A DNA stretch of 64,000 nucleotides from Chrysemys picta bellii (GCF_011386835.1 NC_088805.1:29078001-29142000); one strand, 5' to 3'; positions 4,378 through 48,446 are shown, numbered from the stretch's first letter. The notes: a model not told the origin generated them from the sequence alone. Program-made: numbers and translations.

Positions 4378-4600
4378 GTAAGGAGGGTGTGGGGAATATA
4401 ACTTGGTCATTAAAATGTTCAGAGTCAGAGAGGGAGGCAGTTAGCTGGGGGTATGGGCAGCAACTAGCAATGGAGAAAGGGGCATTACCTTTGTCTTTTT
4501 AAGATGCTGGGCTGTACTGGGTGAAGGAGCTGCTCTGTGATTGAATTAAGGGCAGTACTGCTGCGTTAACACACCCCAAGATTTCCCTTCTCTGCTGCAG
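4378..4600 (+). other. Putative 5' UTR intron of ADAM gene A
   Basis: Donor GTAAGG at 4378, branch-like GTTAAC near 4565, pyrimidine tract and CAG acceptor ending 4600. The same signals are conserved in paralog B. Confidence 0.6.
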
Positions 4601-4673
4601 TTTGGGCATCAGCAACCATAAGTCAGAGCCAGAGAGCATTCAGTTTAATCCAGCGTTAATACCGAGGAGTCTG

Positions 4674-6869
4674 ATGGCAAGGGACAGAGTGCTGCTCCTC
4701 AAACTGGGCATCTCCATGGTGCTGCTGGGGTCTCTCCTTCCCAGCACAGGCGCTAGTCCTCATCCACCTCCACGGTTTGCTTCCTATGAAGTGATAGTTC
4801 CAAGGAAGCTAGCACCGAAGGAAGGCAAAGCCACCAATGATGAGGTGTCCTATGTCATCAAGGCAGAAGGAAAGAACCACATTGTTCACCTAAAGCAGAA
4901 GAAAGGATTCCTAGTAAAAAATTTCCCAGTCTTCACTTACGATGCTAGAGGTCAACTGAGAGTAGATCTGCCCCATATTCCAGACGATTGTTACTATCAT
5001 GGGTACGTGGAAGATACCCCAGAGTCTCACGTGGCCCTCAGCACCTGCTCTGGACTCAGAGGGTTTCTCCAGATTGGGAGCTTAAACTATGGCATTGAAC
5101 CTGTGGAGACTTCCTTTACATTCCAGCACCGTCTTTATCGGACAGAGGAGATGGAACCCAAGGCTGTGACGTGTGGATTAACCGCCAAAGAGATCAAATA
5201 TCAAGCTTCTGAAACAGAGAGGAGGCAGGTTCCCAAAGCACAGGAATTTCATCCCTGGACGCACACTAAGTATATGGAGCTTCTTATAGTGGTGGACAAA
5301 CTGCGGTTTGAATATTCAGGCAGAAATATAACTAATGTTTCAATGCAAGTTGTTGATGTAGTCAGTATGGTGGATGAGCTTTTTTATCCTCTTCGTCTTC
5401 GCGTACTACTAACTGGACTAGAGATTTGGACAGAAAGCAACCCCATCAAAATTACACACAATATAAGTGAGGTTCTTTCCAATTTTAACCTTTGGAGAAA
5501 ACGTCACATTTATCCACGGGCGCCACATGATGTAGGACACCTGTTTGTGTATATGAACTTTGGAGCAAACATTGGAAAAGCGTACCTGAGAAGTGTCTGT
5601 GATAAGAAACGTGCATCGGGTGTCGAAGCATTCATGCATGGCCCTTCAAAGGAGTTTGCTGTGCTTGTTGCTCATGAGTTGGGACATAATATTGGCATGA
5701 AACATGATGGAAAAGAGTGCGTATGTGCCAATGACAGTACCTGCATCATGAATGCGCATCATATACAAGTCCATCAATTCAGTAACTGCAGTTCTAGAGA
5801 CTATTTTGACCTAACAGTGTCAGGGCAAGGACGCTGTCTGAATAACATCCCAGAAATTGAAAAACTATTTCACGTGCAGCATTGTGGCAACTTCATAGTT
5901 GACCCAGGAGAACAGTGCGATTGTGGCTCCAAAAAGCAATGTAAAAAAGACCCTTGTTGTGATCACACTTGCCAGTTGAAGCCAGGGGCTATTTGTGATT
6001 TGGGACAGTGCTGTCACAAATGTCAGTTTCTTCCAGAAGGAAGAACATGCAGAAAGAAGACAAGTGAATGTGACCTGCCTGAGTATTGCAATGGGACTTC
6101 TCCGTGGTGCCAAGAGAATGTGTATATGCAAGACGGGACTTTATGCAGTGACAATGGCTACTGTTTTCATGGGTTTTGCTCTACTCACAATTTACAATGT
6201 CAATACCTCTTTGGCAAAGCAGCCATGGCAGCTCCAGAAAGTTGCTTCAAAGAAGTGAACTCAAAAGGGGATCGGTTTGGCAACTGTGGAGGGGATGGGG
6301 GAGATGTAAAGTTTGAGGCATGTAAATTGGAAAACATCTTGTGCGGAAGGGTGCAGTGTGTGAATGTAAAAAGAATACCGCGGGGAGAGGATCATACGAC
6401 CATAATTCAAACTCCAGTGGATAATATGTGGTGCTGGGGTACAGACTTTCACGTGGGGATGGAGCTTTCTGATACTGGTATAGTAGACGATGGCGCAAAG
6501 TGTGGTACAAATAAGATTTGTATTAACCATACATGTGTCAATGAGACAACAGTGCTGACATCCAACTGTACTGTAAAGAAGTGCGGCGGCAGAGGGGTTT
6601 GCAACAGTAATGGGAACTGCCACTGTAATGACGGTTGGGCCCCTCCGAACTGTCAGTTCGCCGGCTTTGGAGGAAGCATTGACAGTGGGCCCCCACCACT
6701 TTCCAAAATTGGACTCTTTAGTTTTGTCGGGACTATTGTGGGCATAACCATTGCTGCCGCTATAGTCGCTGCAGCTATTGCTCTCTTACTTAAAAAGCCT
6801 GTAACAAAAGTGATTCGTAGCGCATCTGAAAGCGTTGCGCAAATAAATCTCTCTCGCAGGAGCATGTAA
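4674..6869 (+). CDS. ADAM metalloprotease-disintegrin, single coding exon, copy A (ADAM1/fertilin-alpha-like by synteny; may be labelled ADAM20/21-like by similarity)
   Basis: Uninterrupted ORF: signal peptide, prodomain, reprolysin domain with HELGHNIGMKHD and Met-turn CIM, disintegrin loop KTSECDLPEYC, Cys-rich and EGF-like domains, TM helix, short tail. First ATG is at 4674; the ORF-track start at 4602 is TTG. Confidence 0.93.
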   Translation: MARDRVLLLKLGISMVLLGSLLPSTGASPHPPPRFASYEVIVPRKLAPKEGKATNDEVSYVIKAEGKNHIVHLKQKKGFLVKNFPVFTYDARGQLRVDLPHIPDDCYYHGYVEDTPESHVALSTCSGLRGFLQIGSLNYGIEPVETSFTFQHRLYRTEEMEPKAVTCGLTAKEIKYQASETERRQVPKAQEFHPWTHTKYMELLIVVDKLRFEYSGRNITNVSMQVVDVVSMVDELFYPLRLRVLLTGLEIWTESNPIKITHNISEVLSNFNLWRKRHIYPRAPHDVGHLFVYMNFGANIGKAYLRSVCDKKRASGVEAFMHGPSKEFAVLVAHELGHNIGMKHDGKECVCANDSTCIMNAHHIQVHQFSNCSSRDYFDLTVSGQGRCLNNIPEIEKLFHVQHCGNFIVDPGEQCDCGSKKQCKKDPCCDHTCQLKPGAICDLGQCCHKCQFLPEGRTCRKKTSECDLPEYCNGTSPWCQENVYMQDGTLCSDNGYCFHGFCSTHNLQCQYLFGKAAMAAPESCFKEVNSKGDRFGNCGGDGGDVKFEACKLENILCGRVQCVNVKRIPRGEDHTTIIQTPVDNMWCWGTDFHVGMELSDTGIVDDGAKCGTNKICINHTCVNETTVLTSNCTVKKCGGRGVCNSNGNCHCNDGWAPPNCQFAGFGGSIDSGPPPLSKIGLFSFVGTIVGITIAAAIVAAAIALLLKKPVTKVIRSASESVAQINLSRRSM

Positions 6870-6928
6870 AAATAAGGCAGCATTAGCTTCAAAAAGCCAG
6901 TGCAGAGTGGCAAGTCCATGGTTTAGGG

Positions 6929-7245
6929 CAGGGGTCGGCAACGTTTGGCATGTGGCTCGCCAGGGTAAGCACCCTAGCAGGCCGGGCCAGTTTATTTATC
7001 TGTTGACGCGGCAGGTTCGGCCGATCGCGGCCCCCCGTCCCGGACCAATGGGGGCGGCGGGAAGCCGCGGCCAGCACATCCCTCGCCCGTGCCGCTTCCT
7101 GCCGCTCCCTTTGGCCCGGGACGGCAAACCGCGGCAAGTGGGGGCCGCGATCGGCCGAACCTGCCACGTCAGCAGGTAAATAAACTGGCCTGGCCCGCCA
7201 GGCGCTTACCCTAGCGAGCCGCGTGCCAAACGTTGCCGACCCCTG
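6929..7245. mobile_element. Palindromic hAT-type MITE in the 3' UTR of ADAM A
   Basis: TIR CAGGGGTCGGCAAC / GTTGCCGACCCCTG. Perfect 8-bp TSD GTTTAGGG (6921-6928, 7246-7253). Confidence 0.92.
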
Positions 7246-7401
7246 GTTTAGGGTTTCTCAGAGCAGTTGTGGAAATGCCTGGGGAACCCTGCCAGAGAAT
7301 CGATGGGTCCGGATGACTAGTTTCAATAGGACTCATGTAAATTTACTTTATACATACGCACACACACTTTTGGCAGTTTGTTCTGTTTTTAAAAATATTT
7401 A

Positions 7402-7407
7402 AATAAA
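7402..7407 (+). terminator. Candidate polyadenylation signal of ADAM A
   Basis: First AATAAA after the stop codon and the MITE. Confidence 0.45.
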
Positions 7408-8948
7408 TTTGGTCTTGGAATCAAATAGCAAAACGGTCAGCGAATTAAAAAACGGATGGATTTAAATCTATTGATCATCCCCCCGCCCCCCCATCAGCCC
7501 TAAGCAATTCACAGCTTGTCTGTGCCAGGGTTTGTAACTGGGGTCTGACTGGAATCCGGCAGCCTTGCTTCCCCGTTCATCCCCAATGTGTTTTTTTAGG
7601 ATACTGGTGAAGTGGCACACAAGCTGGCAGAAGAGGGGCGAGACCCAATTGGGAGTTTTAAAAACGTAATATGTAGGGCTAAGGTTCCTATTTTTTGCCA
7701 TTTTTTTTCTTCACAACCCACAGTTTTTTCCCTCAGCAGAGACTGGTAGCACCTAATATTGTCCCCTTCAGTAAAAGTCAGCTTTCCAAATGGCCGTCAT
7801 CTCTCCTTGTTCTCAGTGAGACAGAAGCCACAGGCAGCCCTCAGTTAAGATGGCTGCCACTTCCCTACAGCCTGTGGAGGAGGGCTTTAGGCAGCTCTTA
7901 AAAGAAATGGACACTGTCCATGTCCCCCATTGTTACCCATGGGGCTAAAGTACTGGTGCCCTGAGGGAGGAGGGTGGCCTCATATTCTCTGAGGAGGCAG
8001 AGAGGGGCACTGTGAAGAACAGGAGGGCGGAGTGAGAAAGGGCCGTTGTCCCCAAGGGAAGCACACTAGCATGGGCAAATACAGATGAGTGAAGGAAGAA
8101 GCCGTGGAGGCTTCCCAGAGAGGGTCAGGAGGGAGGTGGGTTATCGGTAAGGGCAAAGGCTAGAGTGGGATCAATGGCAGCCACTCCCGCCTTACCCCAC
8201 CCCAGGGCGTAGGAGAGGGCAAGTGGAATCCCCTCCAAGCAGCCAGCAAGGGGCGGGGGGATGACCCCTTTTTGTGGTTTTTAGCAGTTCAGGTTGAATT
8301 TTGAAGCTCACAGAAAATCAGGGTCGGGCAGCCTCACCCCTGTAGGCTCAAAGGTCAGAACGCAGACCAGGAAAAAAAAAACAGTTTAACAAAACAAAAC
8401 AAAACAAAAAAGAAGTCCCTCGCTGTTTAAAATAATCTCCTGCTACGTGGGGAGCTGAGTCATGATTTTTAAATGCTTGTTTTTGGCAACACAGCCTATG
8501 GCCCTCCTGCATTTTCCCCCTTCACAAGCCCCTGTCCCCAAGCCTCAGCATAGTAGCTGCTGACAGCCATCCAGCGCCCCATTCACCAAATTGTCCCCTT
8601 CCAACACATCAAAGGATTTCTCCAGGCACACACAACTCATTATCTTAACACTGGGCGGCGTTGGAAAAGGAGGTAGTGGAAGACTGACATGGCTGAGGGC
8701 CGGGATGGGTGCTCTGTGGTGTACAGGAATCGGGGCAGTGCTAAATGCTAGATACCATTTCATTTCTGTCGTGCAGTCGTGGCACAGGTCCCACGTGCAG
8801 CACTATTTTAATTGCGTCACAACCAGGACTTTTGTGAATTGTAGCTTGAATAGCTGCACCAGCTCTTGTGAGAACTGACTCAAGGAACGGGGCGTAGCTG
8901 GGCTTTCACGGCGCTGGGTTCTGGCATAGCTTGGAAACGTGCTAGTTT

Positions 8949-8991
8949 TACACACACACACACACACACACTCACACACTCTCTCTCTCTC
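8949..8991. repeat. (CA)n-(CT)n compound microsatellite
   Basis: Visible dinucleotide runs. Confidence 0.9.
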
Positions 8992-9414
8992 TCCTGGAAA
9001 GCCCTAAAGTCTGTCTCGGCACAAACCACACATGGCTACGTTCTAAGCCCCTCTCCAACCCGAGCCACATGCCGTAGAATGTTCACGTTTAAAGAGGCAA
9101 CAAAACAATCAACCGCCATCCCGGCCATTCCATGGCAGCAGGAATTTCAGGGGTTAAACATAACCCGTTTTTTTTTGTTTTGCCCATTTAGAAGCCTGGA
9201 TTTCCTTGCATACAGCGGTTTGTTAGTGGAGCTGTGCTTTATTATATAGTGAGACGGTCTGTTGCGCTGTGGTACTTGGTATCACACAAATGGTGAGCAC
9301 AATCCATTGATGTTACAAAAGCGAGATGGGCGAGGAAGGAGCCCACAGAAATGCGGGTGTGAAAGAGGGCCGGCCCCTTTGTGCATTACTTGATGCTGAT
9401 CTGGAGCGTGAAAT

Positions 9415-9611
9415 GTAAGGGGACAAGTTTTACTGGGTCTACTCACTAAAGCTCAGAGAGGCAGTTGGCAGCGGGCATGGGCAGCAGTTGGGAGTGGCGA
9501 GAGAGAGGCATTACCTGCTGCTTCTTAAGATGAGAAGGAGCCACTCGGTGATTGAATTAACGACCGTGCTGCTGAGTTAACACACCCCACAATTTCCCTT
9601 CTCTGCTCCAG
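9415..9611 (+). other. Putative 5' UTR intron of ADAM gene B
   Basis: Donor GTAAGG at 9415, GTTAAC branch-like motif, pyrimidine tract and CAG acceptor ending 9611. Homologous to 4378-4600. Confidence 0.6.
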
Positions 9612-9658
9612 TTTGGAAAGCAGCGACCATAAACCAGACCCAGAGAGGATTAGCGTTA

Positions 9659-11911
9659 ATGCCGAGGAGTCTGATGGCAAGGGACAGACTGCTGCTCCTC
9701 AAACTGGGCGTCTCCATGGTGTTGCTGGGGTCTCTCCTTCCCAGCACAGGCGCTAGTCCTCATCCACCTCCACGGTTTGCTTCCTATGAAGTGATAGTTC
9801 CGAGGAAGCTAGCACCAAAAGAAGGCAAAGCCACCAAGGACGAGATGTCCTATGCCATCAAGGTGGAAGGAAAGATCCATGTAGTTCACCTAAAGCAGAA
9901 GAAAGGATTCCTAGTAAAAAATTTCCCGGTCTTCACTTATGATGCTAGAGGGCAACTGAGAGTAGATCAACCCCATATTCCAGATGATTGCTACTATCAT
10001 GGGTATGTGGAAAATACCCCAGAGTCTCACGTGGCCCTCAGCACCTGCTCTGGACTCAAAGGGTTTCTCCAGATTGGGAGCTTAAACTATGGCATTGAAC
10101 CCGTGAAGACTTCCTTTACGTTCCAGCACCGTCTTTATCGAACAGAGGAGATGGAACCCAAGGCTGTGACGTGTGAAGTAACTGATGGAGAAAGAAAACG
10201 TCCAGCAACAGTAATGGAGACTAGGAAGGACTTAATAGGTAAAGACCTGTCTATAAGATTCAGACACACCAGGTATCTCGAGCTCTTTATAGTGGTGGAC
10301 AAAAAAATGTTTGACTATCATGGGAAAAATGAAACCAATGTGACATATCTCGTTGTTGACACAGTCAACATGGCAGATTCTCATTTTCAATCTCTAAAGT
10401 TACGTATACTTCTGGTTGGGCTATTGATCTGGACGCAAAGCAACCCCATTAACATTCCTGAAGACATTAGGTTGCTTCTTCAGAGTTTTAATGACTGGAG
10501 AAGACTTAATATTTCTCCACGGGTGAAACATGATGCTGCACACCTATTTATTTATAAAAATTTTGGAGCTCTAGTTGGGAGGGCATATGTCAGTGGGATC
10601 TGTGAAGGCTATTATGGAGCAGGAGTTGAAGCATACATTTATGATTCTCCAGTACTCTTTTCAAAGGTTCTCTCTCATGAACTGGGTCATAATCTTGGCA
10701 TGGAGCATGATCACACAGGCTGTATGTGTGGCAAACACACCAGCTGCATCATGAATGAAGCGAGTTCAAGAACCAGTCTATTCAGTAACTGCAGTAAAAA
10801 TTATTTTTTAGACCTAATGGATAAAGGAAAAGGAAACTGTTTGTTTAACATCCCTGAACCTCACACACTTTTTACCCTTCAGCGCTGTGGTAACAAAGTA
10901 GTGGACCATGGAGAAGACTGTGATTGTGGGAACCTACGAGAATGTAGAAGAGATCCTTGTTGCCATCACAATTGCACACTGAAGCCAGGAGCGGTTTGTT
11001 CTGTTGGACAGTGCTGTAGAAAATGTAAGTTTCTTCCACCAGGAAGAACATGCAGAGCAATTACAGACGAGTGTGACCTGCCCGAGTATTGTGACGGGAT
11101 TTCTGAGTGGTGTCCTGAAGATGTGTATAAGCAGGATGGAAAGGCATGCAGTGACAAAGGCTACTGTTATAAGGGGAAATGCGCCACCCATAATTTACAG
11201 TGTGAAAGTATCTTTGGAAAAGGAGCTAAAGCTGCTCCAGAAATTTGCTTCAACGAACTGAATGTAAAAGCTGATCGGTTTGGCAACTGTGGGGGTGACG
11301 GGAAAGAAACTGCGTTTGAGAAATGCAACCATAGCAACATTTTGTGTGGGAGAGTGCAGTGTGTGAACGTAAAAACCGTACCTGTCTTGGAGGAATATGC
11401 AACCATAATTCAAACCCCTATGGGCAATGGGTGGTGCTGGGGCACAGACTATCATCCAGGGGTAGATATTGTTGACATCGGAGTAGTGGCAGATGGCACA
11501 ACGTGTGGCAACACACAGGTTTGTATGAACCGGACATGTATGGCTGCTTCAGTGATTAAAAGAGCTTGTGATGAAGACAAAAAGTGCAGCGAGAGAGGAG
11601 TTTGCAACAATAATAAAAACTGTCACTGTATCATGGGCTGGGCCCCTCCAAACTGTCAGTTCCATGGCTTTGGAGGAAGCATTGACAGTGGCCCTCCCCC
11701 ACAAATAGTGAGTGGCAAAATCTGGTGGGTTTTTTGGGCAATACTTGGCCTTGCTCTCCTCATCCTCATTGCTCTTATTCTTGCTGTAAGAAGATTCAAA
11801 GAGTCTATCCTATCATGTCTGCGTCGTGCATTCCTCAAGAAGCCGCAACCAAAAGGTCATCCAGCAGAGAAGGATTCAAAGAAGTCGGAAGGAAGGAAAC
11901 CACATAAGTGA
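9659..11911 (+). CDS. ADAM metalloprotease-disintegrin, single coding exon, copy B (ADAM1-like by synteny)
   Basis: 750-aa ORF with the same domain series, zinc motif HELGHNLGMEHD, CIM Met-turn, disintegrin loop ITDECDLPEYC, TM helix and basic cytoplasmic tail. The ATG homologous to copy A is at 9674. Confidence 0.94.
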   Translation: MPRSLMARDRLLLLKLGVSMVLLGSLLPSTGASPHPPPRFASYEVIVPRKLAPKEGKATKDEMSYAIKVEGKIHVVHLKQKKGFLVKNFPVFTYDARGQLRVDQPHIPDDCYYHGYVENTPESHVALSTCSGLKGFLQIGSLNYGIEPVKTSFTFQHRLYRTEEMEPKAVTCEVTDGERKRPATVMETRKDLIGKDLSIRFRHTRYLELFIVVDKKMFDYHGKNETNVTYLVVDTVNMADSHFQSLKLRILLVGLLIWTQSNPINIPEDIRLLLQSFNDWRRLNISPRVKHDAAHLFIYKNFGALVGRAYVSGICEGYYGAGVEAYIYDSPVLFSKVLSHELGHNLGMEHDHTGCMCGKHTSCIMNEASSRTSLFSNCSKNYFLDLMDKGKGNCLFNIPEPHTLFTLQRCGNKVVDHGEDCDCGNLRECRRDPCCHHNCTLKPGAVCSVGQCCRKCKFLPPGRTCRAITDECDLPEYCDGISEWCPEDVYKQDGKACSDKGYCYKGKCATHNLQCESIFGKGAKAAPEICFNELNVKADRFGNCGGDGKETAFEKCNHSNILCGRVQCVNVKTVPVLEEYATIIQTPMGNGWCWGTDYHPGVDIVDIGVVADGTTCGNTQVCMNRTCMAASVIKRACDEDKKCSERGVCNNNKNCHCIMGWAPPNCQFHGFGGSIDSGPPPQIVSGKIWWVFWAILGLALLILIALILAVRRFKESILSCLRRAFLKKPQPKGHPAEKDSKKSEGRKPHK

Positions 11912-12098
11912 AATGCACAATGGAAAATCCATCATTTAGGGTTTCTCATTGCTGCCTTAGGAAGGCTGGTGGTCCTGGAGCATCAGTGGATCCAATTTAC
12001 TAGTTCAGGGGGTTCGTTTAAAGTTATAAATTCTTAGCATTAGCATTAGATCTTCTGTTAAGGAAGACAGAAACTTCAATACGTTTGGTTTGGATATA

Positions 12099-12104
12099 AA
12101 TAAA
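12099..12104 (+). terminator. Candidate polyadenylation signal of ADAM B
   Basis: AATAAA, with further copies near 12122 and 12175. Confidence 0.45.
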
Positions 12105-13099
12105 GACAAGTAAAACTTACCAAATAAACATGAAAGTTTTACAATTTTCAGCTCAGCACCGAATTTGAAAAAATAATAAAGTAAGTTCTTACTAATTAAA
12201 CTGAGTGGCTGGAAGATCATATTGCAAATTATTTATTTAAATTCATGAAAGGTTTTTAAGAGACCCAGCTGAGGCTCTGGACTCTGACATAAATTACAAG
12301 ATAGCTGACTCCATGAGAGCCAACAAAACTCCCTAGCTCTACAAAACTACAGCCCTATCAATCCTATCAGTCTGCAAAAGCCCGATAGAGAGATGCACCA
12401 TTTAGCATGCCATGATGCTCAACTTACACAGGACCTAGTTAGGACTAGAGCTAGTTCCAAAGTTTTAGGTACCTTCATGGAGAATGTAAAGTAGCGAGTA
12501 AGCAAACAAACACTGCTAACAGTCAAAGCTGCTGCCTCACAGAGAGTACTGTGCTTTGGCAACCTCTGATTTTATGGATCTGGACATGTCAAGGCTGATC
12601 TCAGCATTTGTGACAAGGGAAAGGACTAGAAACCTTTTTCTTTTCAAATCAGCCTGGTGGATGTAACTGGTGTAACCCAATCATTAAAGCTTCCTCCCGG
12701 CCATGTGCCACCATCCTGCAGATGAGCTGACTTCTCTGGCAAGTTACCAGAGTGGCTTCTGGGTACAAGAGGGGGCAGCTGAATAGCATGAGAGGCAATT
12801 TGTTCTAGTGGACTAAACATGCTAGGTTTGTTGACAGTGGGAAAATCAGTAGTGTTATTAGCAAGTTTTAAACACCTGTTTTCCCAGTGTAGATAAATCC
12901 CCTGAGAGCGAAGTACTCCTGCATCCTAGTCCTTTCTCTGATGCCTTCTGTGGCTTTGGAAAGTCACTGACCATCTCTGCCTCACTCTCTTTCAGTAGCT
13001 CTGTCTGTAAAATGGGAACAATGATATTGACATGCCTACAACACAAGAGTGGAGGGTATGGTGATAAATTAGTTAATTGATGTTAAGGCCACTGTGATC

Positions 13100-13525
13100 A
13101 TATACTCTGACCTGCTGCATAACCCAGGCCAGTGAATTTCTCCAAATGATTCTGCATAAAGTCCTAACTTGTTTGAGCTACAGAGTGCCTTTTAAAAAGA
13201 CATCCAGTTAAGATTTATAGGCGTCAAGTGATGTGGAAATAGTGACATCCCTAGATAAGTTATTCCAATGGTTAATTAAGATGCAAAATATAACAGTGCA
13301 GTTATTTCTCTGCACTTGTCTCTCTTCAACTTCCAGCCATTTGATCTTCTTTTAACATTGTCTGCTTAAGTGCTTTCTACTCGCAGAAACCTTCTCCCTT
13401 TGCAATTTCGTATAGTCCATGATCAAGTCACCTATTAACCTTCTCTTGGATAAACTAAATAAACTGAGCTGCTTTCGTCTCACTGTATGGCAGGTTTTTC
13501 AGACCTCGTATCACTCTTGGTAAAG
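13100..13525 (-). mobile_element. Degenerate CR1 LINE 3' fragment
   Basis: Resembles reverse-complement CR1 RT end (TTCCAATGGTTAATT...TTCCAGCCATTTGATC...CAAGTCACCTATTAACCTTCTC). Recognised by eye; boundaries approximate. Confidence 0.55.
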
Positions 13526-14392
13526 AGCTCTACTGTGTAAATGGTAAAATTCACCCACACATACAGAAACCCTCCAATGGCTCCTGCCCTCAGGCCCCTA
13601 ACTTATTTGGAGAAGTATCCTTGAAATCCCTTTTAAATTTTGTCATCTATCCATTTCCTCCAGCCTTAACAGCTGCGCTGTGCATCTCCTTCAGTGGGAG
13701 GCTGGTCACGGCATGAAGGTACCCTCAACCCCTTTTCATATACAAGGGAACCTATGTTCTGGGACTACCCCCAAAGAATCATCATGCTCTTCCTCACCGA
13801 AATCCTAGGGCTAGCACCATGCATAGCTATGTGATATCACAGTGGGAATGATTCATTTCTGATTGAAGAGATGGGGGGAGGAAAACCCCTCACACAAGCC
13901 CACCCAAAAAAGGATGCATCCACTCTGAATATTAAATGTTTGCTAGCAATGAAATCTGAGACATCAATAACATTTGACAGGAGTTTGCCCTGTACAAGGA
14001 GGAGATGACAGTGCCCGATTGCAGAGATTGTTACATACTGCGCCACCTAGTGGCTGAACGTAGCATTCCGCCCCAGACACCTAACCTGTTCAGGTGCCTT
14101 TGCATATTTCATTAGGCATCTATATGTAGCTTTAGGCTCCTAAATACCTTTGAAAACCTGGCCCTCAGTGACTGAAGCTTTGAAACCATTCAAAGAGAAC
14201 TACTTAACTAGCGTGCACGGAACAATGGTGTAACTATTACAGTAGTGCTCAAACCCAGAGTAACTCCACTGAATAAAGAGTAATGATATATTAGCAATAC
14301 ATTACCCAATTAAATGTAAGACCTTTTTGATGTGTGGAAGGTATTGTATTCAGAATGATTCTTGACTGCCCCGTGACTGATGGTGTGATACA

Positions 14393-14530
14393 TTTCTAAC
14401 ACAGAACGTGGGGGTGATACGTTTCTAACACAGAATGTGGGGGTACCCAAAATACTCTTTTTTAGTATTAATTAACAATGTCTTGTAGAATACTCTTTTA
14501 GTATTAATTAACAATGATGTGTTGTAGAAT
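14393..14530. repeat. Two adjacent short tandem duplications (about 29-bp and about 38-bp periods)
   Basis: TTTCTAACACAGAAYGTGGGGGT x2, then AATACTCTTTTT(T)AGTATTAATTAACAATG x2. Confidence 0.85.
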
Positions 14531-16080
14531 GTGCACTTCACAACATACAGCTCTCTGGTGAAGATAGTATTAAAACAAGTTTTAATACAAAAGAGCCATC
14601 CAGCCCACAAGCCTAGAGCATGAAACGAATGAACCAGCAAAATCAGAAGAGATCCAAAACGATTATCAGAGAATCATAGATGTTAATGACAGAAAACCCA
14701 TCACTCATCTCTCCAGTTAGACGTAAGCAAGTTACTAGAATCTGGTTTGTCCATCAATTAGATTATAAACTCCTTGGGGCAGGGAATCTGACTTTCTGGG
14801 AAGCACCCTTTATGCTAGTGGGTGCCATAAAATAATTTCTAACAATAATAAAATCCATCTGATGTCCCATCTAGGCCAATCCCAATCAGTACAGGATTGA
14901 ATCCTACAGTATATTTCTCCACTGCCTAGTTTATTCCAGTTTCAACAACTCAAGGTGATGCTGCCATCTCTTTAAGGGAGACCAGTCTCTATTTACACAC
15001 TGCAACTGATAAAACTTTTGTAGATACGTGAAAGAGTCTGCAAACCCTAATGTCCTTCCCTACAGGGGACTCATGAAGCTATAATCTCAGGCACTCTTTA
15101 TCCTCAGTCACATGTTGTAGACTGTTCACCTTCAACCAGACATGGAAGAAGAAGAAAAAATGCTGTTTGAAACATTCCATTGCAGCAGGTGTTTCAGAGG
15201 CAAAGGCCAAAACACTTTTCTTCTTCCCAGTTTAGGAGCCTGAATTTCCTATCATACTACAGAGGTCTGTCAGTATTTCAGTGCTCCAGAATCGAGCAAA
15301 GCGGGGCCTTTAGCTGGCCCCTGGCTTTGTGCTATGTGATAGCACCCTTCAAAATTTCTTGTAACCTTATCCAATAGCCATCCGGGGTGTTTTACAAGCA
15401 TTAGCAATAATGGTTGGGAATAGCACCAAAGACAAGGCCTTTAGCTGAAGTCTAGGTTGAACTAGTACCTCAGCAATATGGTCATTCAAGTGCTACAGCT
15501 GCATGCGTTCAGCTGGTCCTAACTCCGTCCCACAATGCAATGCTTTGTTTTGGAGGATGCTCCAAAGCTTCTGCTCCCACCAAATATACTAGGTGAGCAG
15601 TTGAATTTTTTTTCAGCTTTCTCCAGCTGGCAACTAAGGCTCCAATGCTGCAGCAGAATAACCTGTGGATGTGCAGTTGCCTGCCAATGTGCACCCAGTT
15701 GCTAGATAGGGGTCTTGGTTTGGGGGCTACTTGCCTTTTGACAGTAACCAGCAGAAATCAGCTGAAGGATTCTAATGGAGCCCACTGGAATTTCCTCTTG
15801 GGCAGGAAGAGTAGCTGGAGTGACTGCCGAAGAACAGTGGATTCTGGGTATAGTGAAAAAGCCAAGAAAGTTGACTCAAGGTCATTTGGATCTGACAAGT
15901 CAGGCATTTGCTTTAACTAAAACCATGTTTTCTCCGCTATAATTTGTGGAAATTTGGCTTGGAACCAAGCATTGTCTGTCTATTTGCATCTTTATGAATT
16001 GCCAGTGCCAGTTAACTACCACACAGTTAAAAGAAAGTCAGAAACCTTCCACCCCTAGACTAACCATTGGAGCTGGTGCG

Positions 16081-16270
16081 GTCTAGTGCATAGAGCACAG
16101 ACCTGGAGCCAAGAGCGCCCGTGCTCTAATCCTGACATTGACTTGCGGCATTGCCTTGGACACGTCTCTTAGCTACTCTGTGCCTCAGTTTCCACATCTA
16201 TAAAGTGGAGACTAGACTTCCCTACCCTTCAGGATGTTATGAGGACATATTAGTTAGCTTGTACAGTGTT
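16081..16270 (+). mobile_element. Old CORE-SINE (MIR-like) fragment
   Basis: tRNA-like head followed by core CTCTGTGCCTCAGTTTCCACATCTATAAAGTGG. Confidence 0.55.
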
Positions 16271-16580
16271 TTGAATGTAAAAAGTCCTGCTACTATATAA
16301 ATAACACAGCAATGACATAGCTTGTGTGTGTGTATGTTTGTGCTGCACTGCCCCATACTGGATAGAATCAGAACTGCTCACCTGTGTGTCATTGGTGCTA
16401 TATTGCTGCCAGTGAAGGGTGATTCTCCTTTAGCCCAAATAGAAGGGGCCTGTGAGTGTGGAAGTGAAATGTGTAGGAAAAAGAGGTGCTAAGGTAACAA
16501 TGATGGGACAGCGTAAGAACCTAGCTACATATCCCACTGTTGCAGTAAAGTTCAGCATAGGGATAACAGTGAAGTTTTAG

Positions 16581-16659
16581 TATCAGAGGGGTAGCCGTGT
16601 TAGTCTGAATCTGTAAAAAGCAACAGAGGGTCCTGTGGCACCTTTAAGACTAACAGAAC
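16581..16659 (+). mobile_element. Penelope-like element terminal fragment
   Basis: TATCAGAGGGGTAGCCGTGTTAGTCTG...GTGGCACCTTTAAGACTAAC, same family as 29659-30024. Confidence 0.65.
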
Positions 16660-19600
16660 TATGAAGTCATAGTTAACTCTGGATTTACTACAGATTTTGG
16701 GGCGGGGGGGGGGGGGGAAAACAAGAAATTCACAGTTCTCAAAAGTCTTTTCTCCCTCTTAAGGGATAGTACAAATTAGGGATGAAATGTTAGCCTTATA
16801 TGTGTACTTACTGATTCCTGTTAGCTTCTATCCACTGTTTTAATGCACCTCCTGCTAAACATTTATTAGGATGATAACGTGGCAAATGCCAGCCATCCAG
16901 TGGTTAGCATTACTACATGCAGGAAGGTTTGGAGTTTCTTGGTCTGGAAATGGTCCAGTTCAATGATGGCTTTTCTCCTGTGGTTAAAATGAGTCAAAGT
17001 CTGACGTCCAGCTCCAGACCCGAGCACAGATGCTGAGAAGGACAGACAGTGAGTGCCAATGACGGCATTTGGGGGAGCGTGAAGACCTGTCAGCACTGGC
17101 ACTGACTGTCATTCGTGTCCTCCTAACAACCGGCCTTACTCCAGTGGTGAATCCTGCAAACAGAACTGAGCCTAGCTCAGAGTTTTCTGAGAATCTACAT
17201 CCTAGGTAACCTGGGGCCAAATCCTGAGGTCCTTACTTGGGAAAAGCTCCCAGGGAATAGAATTCCCACCGCCTCAGTGGGAACCTAAGAATTTAGCTTC
17301 TAGACTAAGAGCTTCTGAAAGTAGGGGCTAACTTATCTGTCTGTAAAGCACCATGTGCACCCCTGGGGCTGTATAATGAATGATCACATTACAGTCACCA
17401 AAGGAACCAGACTCTACATCAATGTATTTGTTATAGAACTTAGTGAGACAAGACATGGGATACAACTGCAAGAGACAACACAGGCCAGGGGCATGCGTGA
17501 TTTTGGAGGTTTGCCCCTTGTAGCTGCCCAGATCTATTTAACCTCACTGCTAATGAAAACAGAGAAGTCAGCTTTCATTCCCGTGGCATCTGCAGCTATG
17601 TCATTGTAAGGCGATGTGGCAGTTTTGTTTGCTAAGTCTCTCTAGCCTGCATCTCCAGGCTGAGAGTACTTCGTTTGTGATGGAGCTTACATGTGTTCTT
17701 TCTCTCTCATTTTCCTTAATAAAGTCATCAGGATTGAAAGTACAGGTTGGATCTTGGTTTATGAGAGACAGAGCAGCTACTATAGATCAGTAGCATGTTC
17801 TGTCTGTGCCATAATCTGCTCCCATTCTTCTTAGTTGTGAGCACCTTGGCAGAAGGTAGCCTCAACTCAACTAGTGTTCTGGTGGAAAGGTTTCTGTGAA
17901 ACTCCTACTGTGACCTGTTTAACTGAGTCTTAAATTTCTCTCTCCCTTTGGTTCGAAGTCTGTACTCCCTGCAGGACTGATCCATAACTAATGAAGCTTG
18001 TCCCCAGCTCTACAGGCACACTGTCAGAACGAATAGAACGGCTCTGAGAATAAATGGATTTAAAATATCTAATCTAAAAAAAAATTTGGATTTTTTCTTA
18101 TAAATCCATGAACTTTTTTTTAAATTTTCCCTGCAGCATTCTAAGCCTCAACGCTGGAGCTTTGTGTTAATGCAAGTCCCTTAAACGTCTCTGTGACTCA
18201 GTTTCACCATCTATAAAATGGGAACAATAGTACTGTTGGGAGGGAAGTTCTCACAGTTGGGGAAGGCGGTCCCGGGTCCCCATCCACATACCTCTGCACA
18301 AGTACCAACCCTTTTCCCTAGAGGATTGTTAGACCTCTGGACCAAGTACTCCACTTAACTACAGAACAATCCTTGTATCTAGCTCAGACAGTGCCAGGAA
18401 TAACCCCAGGGAAAGATCTCCAGCAGGAGTTACACAAGCTCCTTTTCCCCTTGGTACAGCACATATCATACATCCCCCCTATACCCTCCTAGGTAAGCAC
18501 TTGCTCCCTGTTTTGAACTGATCCATGGCCCCCTTCAGTCAGTCCTACCTGCCTGGCACTCTGGAGCTGGGGTGCGCTGTACACTCAGAATGGTGGGGTC
18601 CTGCCAACTGGTCTCAGCTGTCCTGTTGGCTCCAGGCTGTGCGGTCTACATTGCTCCCTCTCTGCGATGGCCATGGCAGCTCTTGATTTCTCTCTCCAAA
18701 ACCAAAATCCCCTCCAGCTGCATGCAGTCCTGCTTTCCAGCCCTGCCCTGTCTGCTCATTTGTCCAGAGTCTCCCAGGTGGTCTGTAGCCAACCCCTTGG
18801 CCTTGGTTTGGAGTGATGGTGCTTCCCTCAGCCAATGAGGCTTGAGACTTCTGTGGCCAATAGTCTGTTCCTGTTCCAGAGTGGCGTTTGCCTAATGCAG
18901 TAGGAGTCGGGCATTTGATAGCCAATCACTCACAGCCACCTCACTCCCACAATTGTCTATGCCAGTTTTCCCTGGAAGGGAGGGTCTCTACCCAGTCCCA
19001 CATCCCTATCCCCTAAACATGCTTGTCCTCAGGTCACCATCTGTAAAATGGAGATAATAGAACTTACCTCACAGGTGCAGGAACTAGGGGTGCTGTAGCA
19101 TCCCCTGGCTTGAAGGGGTTTCCATCATATCCAGGGTTTACAGTTTGGTTCAATGGCTCCCAGTTCCCCCAGTGTACAAATTGTTCCAGCCGCCCTGCTC
19201 CCGGGGTGTTTTGGGAATAATTAGCTAATGTCTGTAAGATGTTTGAAGACATGATGCTCTGTAGAAGTGCTACATGTCACTATTACAAATGGACTACAGG
19301 CCAAATCCTGCTCACCTTACTCATGCGAAGAGCCCTCTTGACTTAAATGGGGTTCCTCATTTAAGCACTGTCAGCTGAGCATGATTTGGTCTTTGGAGCA
19401 GAAATTAAACAATTTAGTTTGTTCATTCTCAAAGCCGAGTGAAGCACAAAAAGCAAACAAACAGCATCAATGATGAAAATTAAATTCTGTTTTCCGAGTA
19501 ATGTCTGTGTTAATTTTAAAGCAAAGAAATTTAGTTTATAAAAACATGATGTAACTTCAGTGGGTTTACAGGGCACAGTGATTTTTAACCTGAAAGTGTG

Positions 19601-19684
19601 ACTGGCATGTAGCTGCCAGTGTTGGACTTGTTTGCATTATTGCCTGGAGGTAGAAGAGCATGAGTTATAAATAGTCACCTTGGC

Positions 19685-19690
19685 TTTATT
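19685..19690 (-). terminator. Candidate polyadenylation signal of TMEM116
   Basis: TTTATT on + (AATAAA on -), about 410 nt past the stop codon. Confidence 0.45.
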
Positions 19691-20102
19691 GTTCAATTGT
19701 AATTACAAATATCTGATCATCACTGAGGAAAGACAAACATCCCCTGGTCATCTACCCTTATGAGAAAGGTCTTTAAGGAGCTGTAAAGGATCTCTGATGT
19801 ACAATTCCCAGCAAATCCTGGAGATGTTTCCATAAGGAAAAGACTGCACTAAATGGCTTACAAAGGTAAAATAATCCATTACAAAGTCATAAAAAACTAT
19901 AAAATAAATAATGATCTTCCGTGAAACAGCTGATCTCCAGCTAGATGTGCTCAGGCTTTCCCAGCCTAACTCTGCAGGTGTTACTGACAAAACAGTTCCG
20001 AACAAGAAAATCAGCAGAATAGCTCTGGCTGACGTCTCACAGACGGGACCGGGCCAGGGTTGCAAGGCAACATGCTGCCCATTCCTTCTGGGCAGAGAAT
20101 TC

Positions 20103-48446
<28,344 letters not shown>

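Follow-up and report, generated by a model that had tools for sequence, protein, structure and literature searches.

In a stretch of 64,000 nucleotides (nt) from Chrysemys picta bellii (GCF_011386835.1 NC_088805.1:29078001-29142000; called the window below), two ADAM1-like genes, A and B, stand in tandem, and a block of about 525 base pairs (bp) at their 5' ends has been exchanged between them. The exchange recurred in at least five turtle lineages, always between the same edges, and the duplication itself is older than the split of turtles and archosaurs. Taken as a whole, the reading that repeated conversion between these old tandem duplicates kept the block alike, with edges that we infer to be held passively and a block that would by now be decaying in the Chrysemys lineage, has in our judgement a probability of about 0.9. 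The genes and the block lie as follows.

4652-5176, plus strand: homogenised tract of copy A, 22 nt of leader and codons 1-167, comprising the signal peptide and the prodomain up to the putative cysteine-switch Cys
9652-10176, plus strand: homogenised tract of copy B, the counterpart of the copy A tract
4674-6869, plus strand: paralog A, ADAM1-like coding sequence, intronless, 731 amino acids (aa) from the MARDR start, by open reading frame and translation
9674-11911, plus strand: paralog B, ADAM1-like coding sequence, intronless, 745 aa, with the architecture of A

Read at a fixed offset of 5000 nt, the two copies are identical at 98, 87, 93, 97 and 85 positions in successive 100-nt segments from 4700 to 5199, and at 25-38 per 100 nt thereafter. 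The gapped alignment places no indels in 4652-5176. The tract differs at 30 of its 502 coding sites, against 499 of 1527 downstream (Fisher p=8e-39), and at 12 of its 167 residues (92.8% identity). Past the tract, residue identity is 25.8% over the next 31 residues, 49.0% in the protease, 65.8% in the disintegrin and 63.5% in the cysteine-rich domain. A first-pass annotation of this DNA had described much of this, and its description stands: the absence of indels from 4652-5175 and 9652-10175, 12 differences in 167 aa (93%), the collapse of similarity right after the prodomain Cys codon, a protease domain roughly half identical, and indels with lower identity 5' of 4652. Its equation of the tract with signal peptide and prodomain is right up to the putative cysteine-switch Cys but too wide at the end, where the linker of about 30 residues (25.8% identity) belongs to the prodomain and lies outside the tract. 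The exact offset of 5000 nt between the two starts is a coincidence, as the spacing differs in every other species (4475-5379 nt in other turtles).

We compared the locus with those of Trachemys, Malaclemys, Mauremys, Gopherus, Chelydra, Lepidochelys (A only), Pelodiscus, Carettochelys and Emydura, and with Crocodylus (one copy) and Apteryx (two copies). Wherever a turtle has both copies (nine species), they are 90-100% identical as far as about 5175 (Chrysemys coordinate), and the collapse comes at the same point.

One could suspect an artefact of assembly or annotation, with chimeric or collapsed 5' ends. Some public gene models indeed merge A and B by mistake (Chelydra, 6.9 kilobases (kb); Gopherus agassizii, 994 aa), and short-read unitigs break inside the tract. 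We give this explanation practically no credence. The two-gene structure is the same in the nine other turtle assemblies, hence in ten independent ones, and the two Chrysemys tracts differ from each other at 30 sites. Logan contigs from two DNA data sets of different studies contain pieces specific to each copy, with 0 mismatches and at like depth (17-24): 4400-4752, 4898-5043 and 5146-6947 or 5072-6947 for A, and 8999-9752 and 9898-10043 for B. With contigs of either version present in both data sets at similar depth, the tract is not an assembly artefact.

Silent sites point to exchange. Measured by the Nei-Gojobori method with the tract taken as codons 1-167, synonymous divergence (dS) between the Chrysemys copies is 0.17 in the tract versus 0.82-0.96 downstream (Fisher test on synonymous counts, p=4e-14). 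Across the nine species it is 0.04-0.17 versus 0.78-1.9, that is 5-20 times lower in the tract, with the lowest tract values in Emydura (0.043) and Chelydra (0.062). Between species, the tract diverges by 8-18%, like the rest of the gene, and its non-synonymous divergence (dN) equals or exceeds that of the rest. The sliding ratio of within-species A-B divergence to between-species divergence of the same paralog lies at 0.28-0.53 within the tract, rises to 1.06 at its edge and stays at 1.6-3.1 downstream, so that a single converted tract is present along the gene. A second tract further downstream, for instance in the EGF-like region (6608-6714), was considered and rejected, since the ratio there never falls below 1.6 and the region is conserved rather than converted.

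The trees of the two partitions agree with this. In the tract tree, A and B pair within Emydura, Pelodiscus and Carettochelys (100/100) and within Chelydra (100/98), and the topology with all B copies in one clade is rejected by the approximately unbiased (AU) test (p=2e-46). The rest of the gene yields an A clade and a B clade (100/100), each matching turtle relationships, and here it is the pairing of A with B that is rejected, both for Chrysemys (p=2e-54) and for Emydura (p=4e-8). Moreover, derived characters occur in both copies of a species, among them a 12-nt deletion and a G at 4817 (both described below) and species-specific residues in Pelodiscus, Emydura, Chelydra and Carettochelys. 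A tract grouping by lineage with the rest grouping by paralog is what had been predicted for conversion, and dS is unequal across domains, as the Chrysemys values show. The earlier proposal of exchange instead of purifying selection is thus upheld, by a tract dS far below that downstream and by a between-species tract rate equal to that of the rest.

It could still be argued that nothing was exchanged and that the prodomain is simply under far stronger purifying or parallel selection, which would fit the low A-B dN of the tract (0.013-0.058). This is hardly credible. Synonymous sites are homogenised as well, tract dN between species is at least as high as that of the rest (Chrysemys-Pelodiscus, 0.10-0.12 versus 0.075-0.115), the tract tree follows lineage with p=2e-46 against paralog grouping, and a 12-nt deletion is common to both copies. 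Because silent sites are homogenised and the between-species rate of the tract matches that of the rest, exchange rather than constraint accounts for the pattern. Interlocus gene conversion between A and B is therefore strongly supported, and its independent occurrence in at least five turtle lineages (Emydura, Pelodiscus, Carettochelys, Chelydra and the testudinoid stem) is firmly shown.

The duplication had been supposed to be old, and it is. In the rest-of-gene protein tree, rooted with turtle and lizard ADAM20/21-like proteins, turtle B groups with bird type 2 (support 92) and turtle A with crocodile plus bird type 1 (support 99). This puts the A/B duplication before the turtle-archosaur split. 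Within 10 kb downstream of A, neither Lepidochelys (12230-22229) nor Crocodylus has a B copy or remnant, and no sea-turtle protein is among the listed members of the B-type protein cluster, which points to independent losses of B in sea turtle and crocodile. In Carettochelys, the B copy (about 14806-17035 of its locus) lacks an ATG at the position homologous to the start, its prodomain is frameshifted, and the Cys codon at the end of the tract has been lost with a 7-nt deletion. Although probably a pseudogene, this copy retains a tract about 93% identical to that of A. Chelydra A has a frameshift near codon 385 (about 11110 of its locus), which may be an assembly error or incipient decay.

Such variation in copy number, with B missing within 10 kb downstream of A in Lepidochelys and crocodile and decayed in Carettochelys, is what one would also expect from birth and death, in which unequal crossing-over or partial 5' re-duplication repeatedly creates chimeric copies and the old copy is lost. 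We hold this to be very improbable. Gene order, spacing (4.5-5.4 kb), the paralog-specific upstream indel and the downstream sequence are conserved in all species, unequal crossing-over would carry the flanks along and alter copy number, and the exchanged patches of emydids are short and run in both directions.

Under gene conversion, the edges of the block call for an explanation. Three features mark them.

4641-4651, plus strand: 11-nt segment present in A and absent from B, paralog-diagnostic in nine turtles, 5' edge of the tract
5172-5174 (B 10172-10174), plus strand: Cys167 codon of PKAVTC, the putative cysteine switch and last shared codon
5177-5261 (B 10177-10264), plus strand: hypervariable linker of A from the Cys to the catalytic domain, 3' edge of the tract

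The 11-nt segment is partial in Carettochelys and 15 nt long in Emydura. On its 5' side, identity is about 83% over some 120 nt (4520-4640) and then 55-69% with many gaps. At the other end, paralog-diagnostic sequence starts no more than about 3 nt past the TGT Cys codon in all turtles with both copies. The linker (85 nt in A) contains indels and is the most divergent part of the proteins, with about 47% nucleotide and 25.8% residue identity between A and B. It is conserved across species within each paralog, and the DNA beyond it is 30-40% divergent between A and B.

Heterology blocks conversion, which depends on long substrates that are nearly identical. We envisage that non-reciprocal exchange repeatedly copies about 525 bp between direct repeats about 5 kb apart, and that the heteroduplex would be stopped on the 5' side at the 11-nt indel and on the 3' side at the unalignable linker and the 30-40% divergent DNA behind it. 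Each conversion would restore the same block, and the DNA outside would be too diverged for rescue, so that the linker and the catalytic, disintegrin, cysteine-rich, EGF-like, transmembrane and tail regions could evolve as two separate genes. In the Chrysemys lineage the block would now be decaying, with a diverged centre and short later patches in emydids. A passive homology barrier is the simplest account of the edges because they coincide with the 11-nt indel and the unalignable linker.

How recent the exchange is depends on the lineage and on the part of the tract. Two sub-tracts can be told apart in Chrysemys.

4838-5059 (B 9838-10059), plus strand: central sub-tract with 13 A/B-diagnostic sites in Chrysemys, Trachemys, Malaclemys, Mauremys and Gopherus
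4674-4830 (B 9674-9830), plus strand: 5' sub-tract over the signal peptide with younger exchange, emydid A and B copies forming one clade (92/89)

The diagnostic sites of the centre match fixed residue differences in at least 10 testudinoid proteins (9-12 fixed A/B residue differences), and the Chrysemys centre has a dS of 0.255 and a divergence of about 9%. Since the 13 sites are shared by all five species, the centre has been unconverted since before the testudinoid radiation. The dS of the whole Chrysemys tract (0.17) is close to the ortholog distance between Chrysemys and Chelydra or Lepidochelys (0.11-0.18) and far above that between Chrysemys and Trachemys (0.03); the last homogenisation of the whole tract is therefore about as old as the durocryptodiran radiation. 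Crown turtles are about 210 million years (My) old, and scaling dS by this age gives rough dates for the last whole-tract exchange of about 120 My in Chrysemys, 30 in Emydura, 45 in Chelydra and 58 in Pelodiscus. By the same scaling, the Chrysemys centre has been frozen for roughly 100 My or more.

The 5' sub-tract is younger: among the five species, no A/B-diagnostic sites that hold across Testudinoidea were found in 4674-4830. The 12-nt deletion, after 4690/9690, is present in A and B of Chrysemys and Trachemys and in Malaclemys A, but not in Malaclemys B. At 4817, all emydid copies but one of the six carry a derived G (the exception, Chrysemys B, has the base A), and Chrysemys A shows B states at 4750, 4752 and 5171. 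Younger exchange confined to the tract ends in the Chrysemys lineage is less secure than the deep pattern. The first-pass annotation had called the prodomains recently homogenised, which applies to the younger patches at the ends and fails for the centre, given its 13 diagnostic sites and lack of conversion since before the testudinoid radiation.

Several points weigh against our account. In the tract tree of the five testudinoid species, the A copies (97/93) and the B copies (100/99) form two sister clades. For Chrysemys itself, the exchange of the centre would be old and the end patches would rest on few sites. Among these, the 12-nt deletion is flanked by a 4-nt direct repeat and could recur, and single sites could be homoplasies. 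The conversion events are, moreover, reconstructed from species-level sequences. The GC content at third codon positions (GC3) bears no signature of biased conversion: GC-biased conversion was dismissed since GC3 in the tract is 0.52 versus 0.41 in the rest, but the single-copy crocodile gene is alike (0.51 versus 0.38). Finally, an edge constant to about 3 nt over the turtle crown also fits selection against conversion into the catalytic domain.

This last point could be taken further. Conversion would then be real and the block policed by selection, a shared prodomain being favoured and conversions into the diverged catalytic domains being removed. The 3' edge is indeed constant in nine species of both turtle suborders and coincides exactly with the putative cysteine-switch Cys. 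Orthologs of either gene diverge under purifying selection (dN/dS of about 0.06-0.28 in the rest of the gene), and the zinc motifs are intact in A and B. We nevertheless regard policing by selection as unlikely. The 11-nt indel and the unalignable linker with its 30-40% divergence are enough to stop a heteroduplex, crown birds keep distinct prodomains in their two paralogs, prodomain identity is being lost in Testudinoidea (the 9-12 fixed differences), and A-B comparisons of the tract give a dN/dS (0.17-0.72) no lower than ortholog comparisons do.

More doubtful still is the idea that the block is an adaptive unit, one signal peptide and inhibitory prodomain for two sperm-type ADAMs that share a folding, latency or pairing partner. 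If this were so, conversion would let the module co-evolve with the partner, and for more than 200 My selection would have kept the edge fixed at the cysteine switch. Where the block is lost, in crown birds and in the tract centre of testudinoids, the two enzymes would have become functionally uncoupled. The first-pass annotation likewise had both catalytic domains share one interchangeable chaperone/inhibitor prodomain; the pattern does not call for selection of that kind.

Passively bounded conversion, which we favour, does not extend to living birds. The prodomains of 33 bird proteins form two paralog clades (100/100 and 100/99). Crown birds are without such prodomain homogenisation, and concerted evolution among them was rejected on these two distinct clades. 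The tract tree makes sisters of bird types 1 and 2 (94/78), a hint of an early exchange in stem birds; the alternative is not rejected (p=0.34). The turtle prodomain groups with that of the crocodile (91/83), a position that could identify the donor only in comparison with an unconverted B-type reference. A protein of Anser brachyrhynchus (744 aa) combines a type-1 prodomain, sister to Anas type 1 (99/89), with a type-2 remainder; this would reflect a prodomain conversion specific to the goose or else a gene model that is chimeric.

Among mammals, mouse ADAM1a and ADAM1b are 75% identical overall and pig ADAM-1a and -1b 74%, the main differences of the pig pair lying in the prodomain, disintegrin, cysteine-rich and C-terminal domains; the two pig proteins are closer to each other than either is to mouse (59-64%) (PMC3141649). 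The similarity within pig fits separate duplications or mammalian conversion, but not conversion confined to the prodomain. With the prodomain among the main differences, pig shows the reverse of the turtle pattern, and a mammalian parallel, which the first-pass annotation had suggested from mouse Adam1a/Adam1b, is not supported for pig.

Partial, bounded conversion between tandem duplicates is classical, and the ADAM1 case is a new example of it. The textbook case of 5'-restricted conversion is the human fetal gamma-globin pair HBG1/HBG2, and similar partial conversions are found in opsin and RH gene pairs. Like HBG1/HBG2, the turtle genes are tandem direct duplicates a few kb apart with a bounded, near-identical 5' block and a diverged 3' part, and the edge lies at a sequence feature that blocks or ends heteroduplex. 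Unlike in HBG1/HBG2, the edges of the turtle block are the same across a whole order, the duplication predates the turtle-archosaur split, and the block corresponds to one protein module, the signal peptide and putatively inhibitory prodomain. Escape from concerted evolution, with conversion dependent on sequence similarity, was reportedly treated by Walsh in 1987 and by Teshima and Innan in 2004. The step profile, the frozen testudinoid centre and the escaped crown-bird prodomains fit that theory, which differs in being a model rather than a gene family; a dependence of conversion rate on identity would be consistent with our data. No report of gene conversion at Adam1 or fertilin alpha was found in the literature searched.

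What is unusual here is that one module is in concerted evolution with constant edges throughout a reptile order, the rest of the genes having diverged before the turtle-archosaur split. Successive stages can be seen side by side: active conversion in Emydura and Chelydra, partial escape in Testudinoidea, full escape in birds, and copy loss in sea turtle, crocodile and Carettochelys. One prodomain would evidently serve two catalytic domains of 49% identity. Conversion also explains the poor orthology in full-length Adam1 trees, from which the first 167 codons are best omitted, and the chimeric gene models at the ADAM1 locus. In the public models of Chelydra (locus 10001-16904) and Gopherus agassizii (994 aa), the two genes are fused or the body of B is preceded by the 5' end of A, probably because gene predictors are led astray by the near-identical tract.

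The identity of the locus follows from its neighbourhood. At the turtle, crocodile and kiwi loci of ten further sauropsid species, the ADAM gene or genes lie downstream of a gene for a 473-aa protein kinase (467 aa in kiwi; the Chelydra model is truncated at 407 aa). Two tandem intronless copies at the Adam1 locus have been described in Chinese softshell turtle, chicken, opossum, mouse and human, in a study that could not establish whether mammalian and chicken copies are strict orthologs (PMC4550289). The neighbouring kinase can be inferred to be MAPKAPK5 from its size and from the same study. Being intronless, in tandem and beside the kinase gene, A and B appear to be the turtle counterparts of the tandem ADAM1 (fertilin-alpha-type) pair. 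The likeness to the amniote Adam1 locus of PMC4550289 comprises the intronless tandem ADAMs next to the 473-aa kinase gene and the intact zinc motifs. In contrast to that study, the turtle and bird copies are 1:1 orthologous outside the tract, and gene conversion, which it leaves unmentioned (0 occurrences), is strongly supported here.

Both proteins are complete ADAMs in their domain architecture, and the 64 kb contain no ADAM copy besides these two. Protein A matches a Chrysemys picta bellii database protein at 100% identity and has A orthologs in 10 turtles. It starts with a signal peptide and prodomain, continues with the reprolysin, disintegrin and ADAM cysteine-rich domains and an EGF-like region, and ends with a putative transmembrane stretch and a short tail. 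Matches to Pfam PF01562, PF01421, PF00200 and PF08516 occur in ADAM order in A and B with E-values of 1e-15 to 1e-60, the Pep_M12B_propep match covering residues 45-113 in both. The following motifs were located, together with a candidate splice signal upstream.

5673-5708, plus strand: zinc-binding motif HExxHxxGxxHD of A, HELGHNIGMKHD, by motif match
5742-5753, plus strand: Met-turn CIMN of A, by motif match
10676-10711, plus strand: zinc-binding motif HExxHxxGxxHD of B, HELGHNLGMEHD, by motif match
10745-10756, plus strand: Met-turn CIMN of B, by motif match
4582-4600 (B 9593-9611), plus strand: splice-acceptor-like motif, a polypyrimidine run followed by CAG, in both paralogs of the turtles examined

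With an intact zinc motif and Met-turn, A and B are both predicted to be catalytically competent. In the M12B family the prodomain acts as an intramolecular chaperone and cysteine-switch inhibitor. The turtle copies resemble ADAM/reprolysin (M12B) proteins in having a propeptide domain and a PK..C motif but differ in the linkers, where no canonical R-x-K/R-R convertase site was found in A or B. PKAVTC lies about 30 residues ahead of the catalytic domain in both copies, and a hydrophobic stretch of 23 residues lies near both C-termini; the labels cysteine switch and transmembrane are given by position and motif alone. The acceptor-like motif, about 75 nt 5' of the ATG, suggests a candidate leader intron with a spliced leader exon. 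Among the runs on record as RNA, none was found to hold the stretch, and two runs guessed to be RNA turned out to be DNA, as intergenic DNA is covered at like depth; they come from related species.

Two repeats were noted near the genes. Just 3' of the A stop, a segment of about 325 nt (6918-7244) reaches a contig word depth of about 250,000 in two DNA runs, where its surroundings have about 20. Two related species have contigs that skip the segment, and it has the look of a very high-copy repeat that inserted recently in Chrysemys. About 700 nt 5' of B, at approximately 8950-8995, lies a compound (CA)n(CT)n microsatellite at which short-read contigs break.

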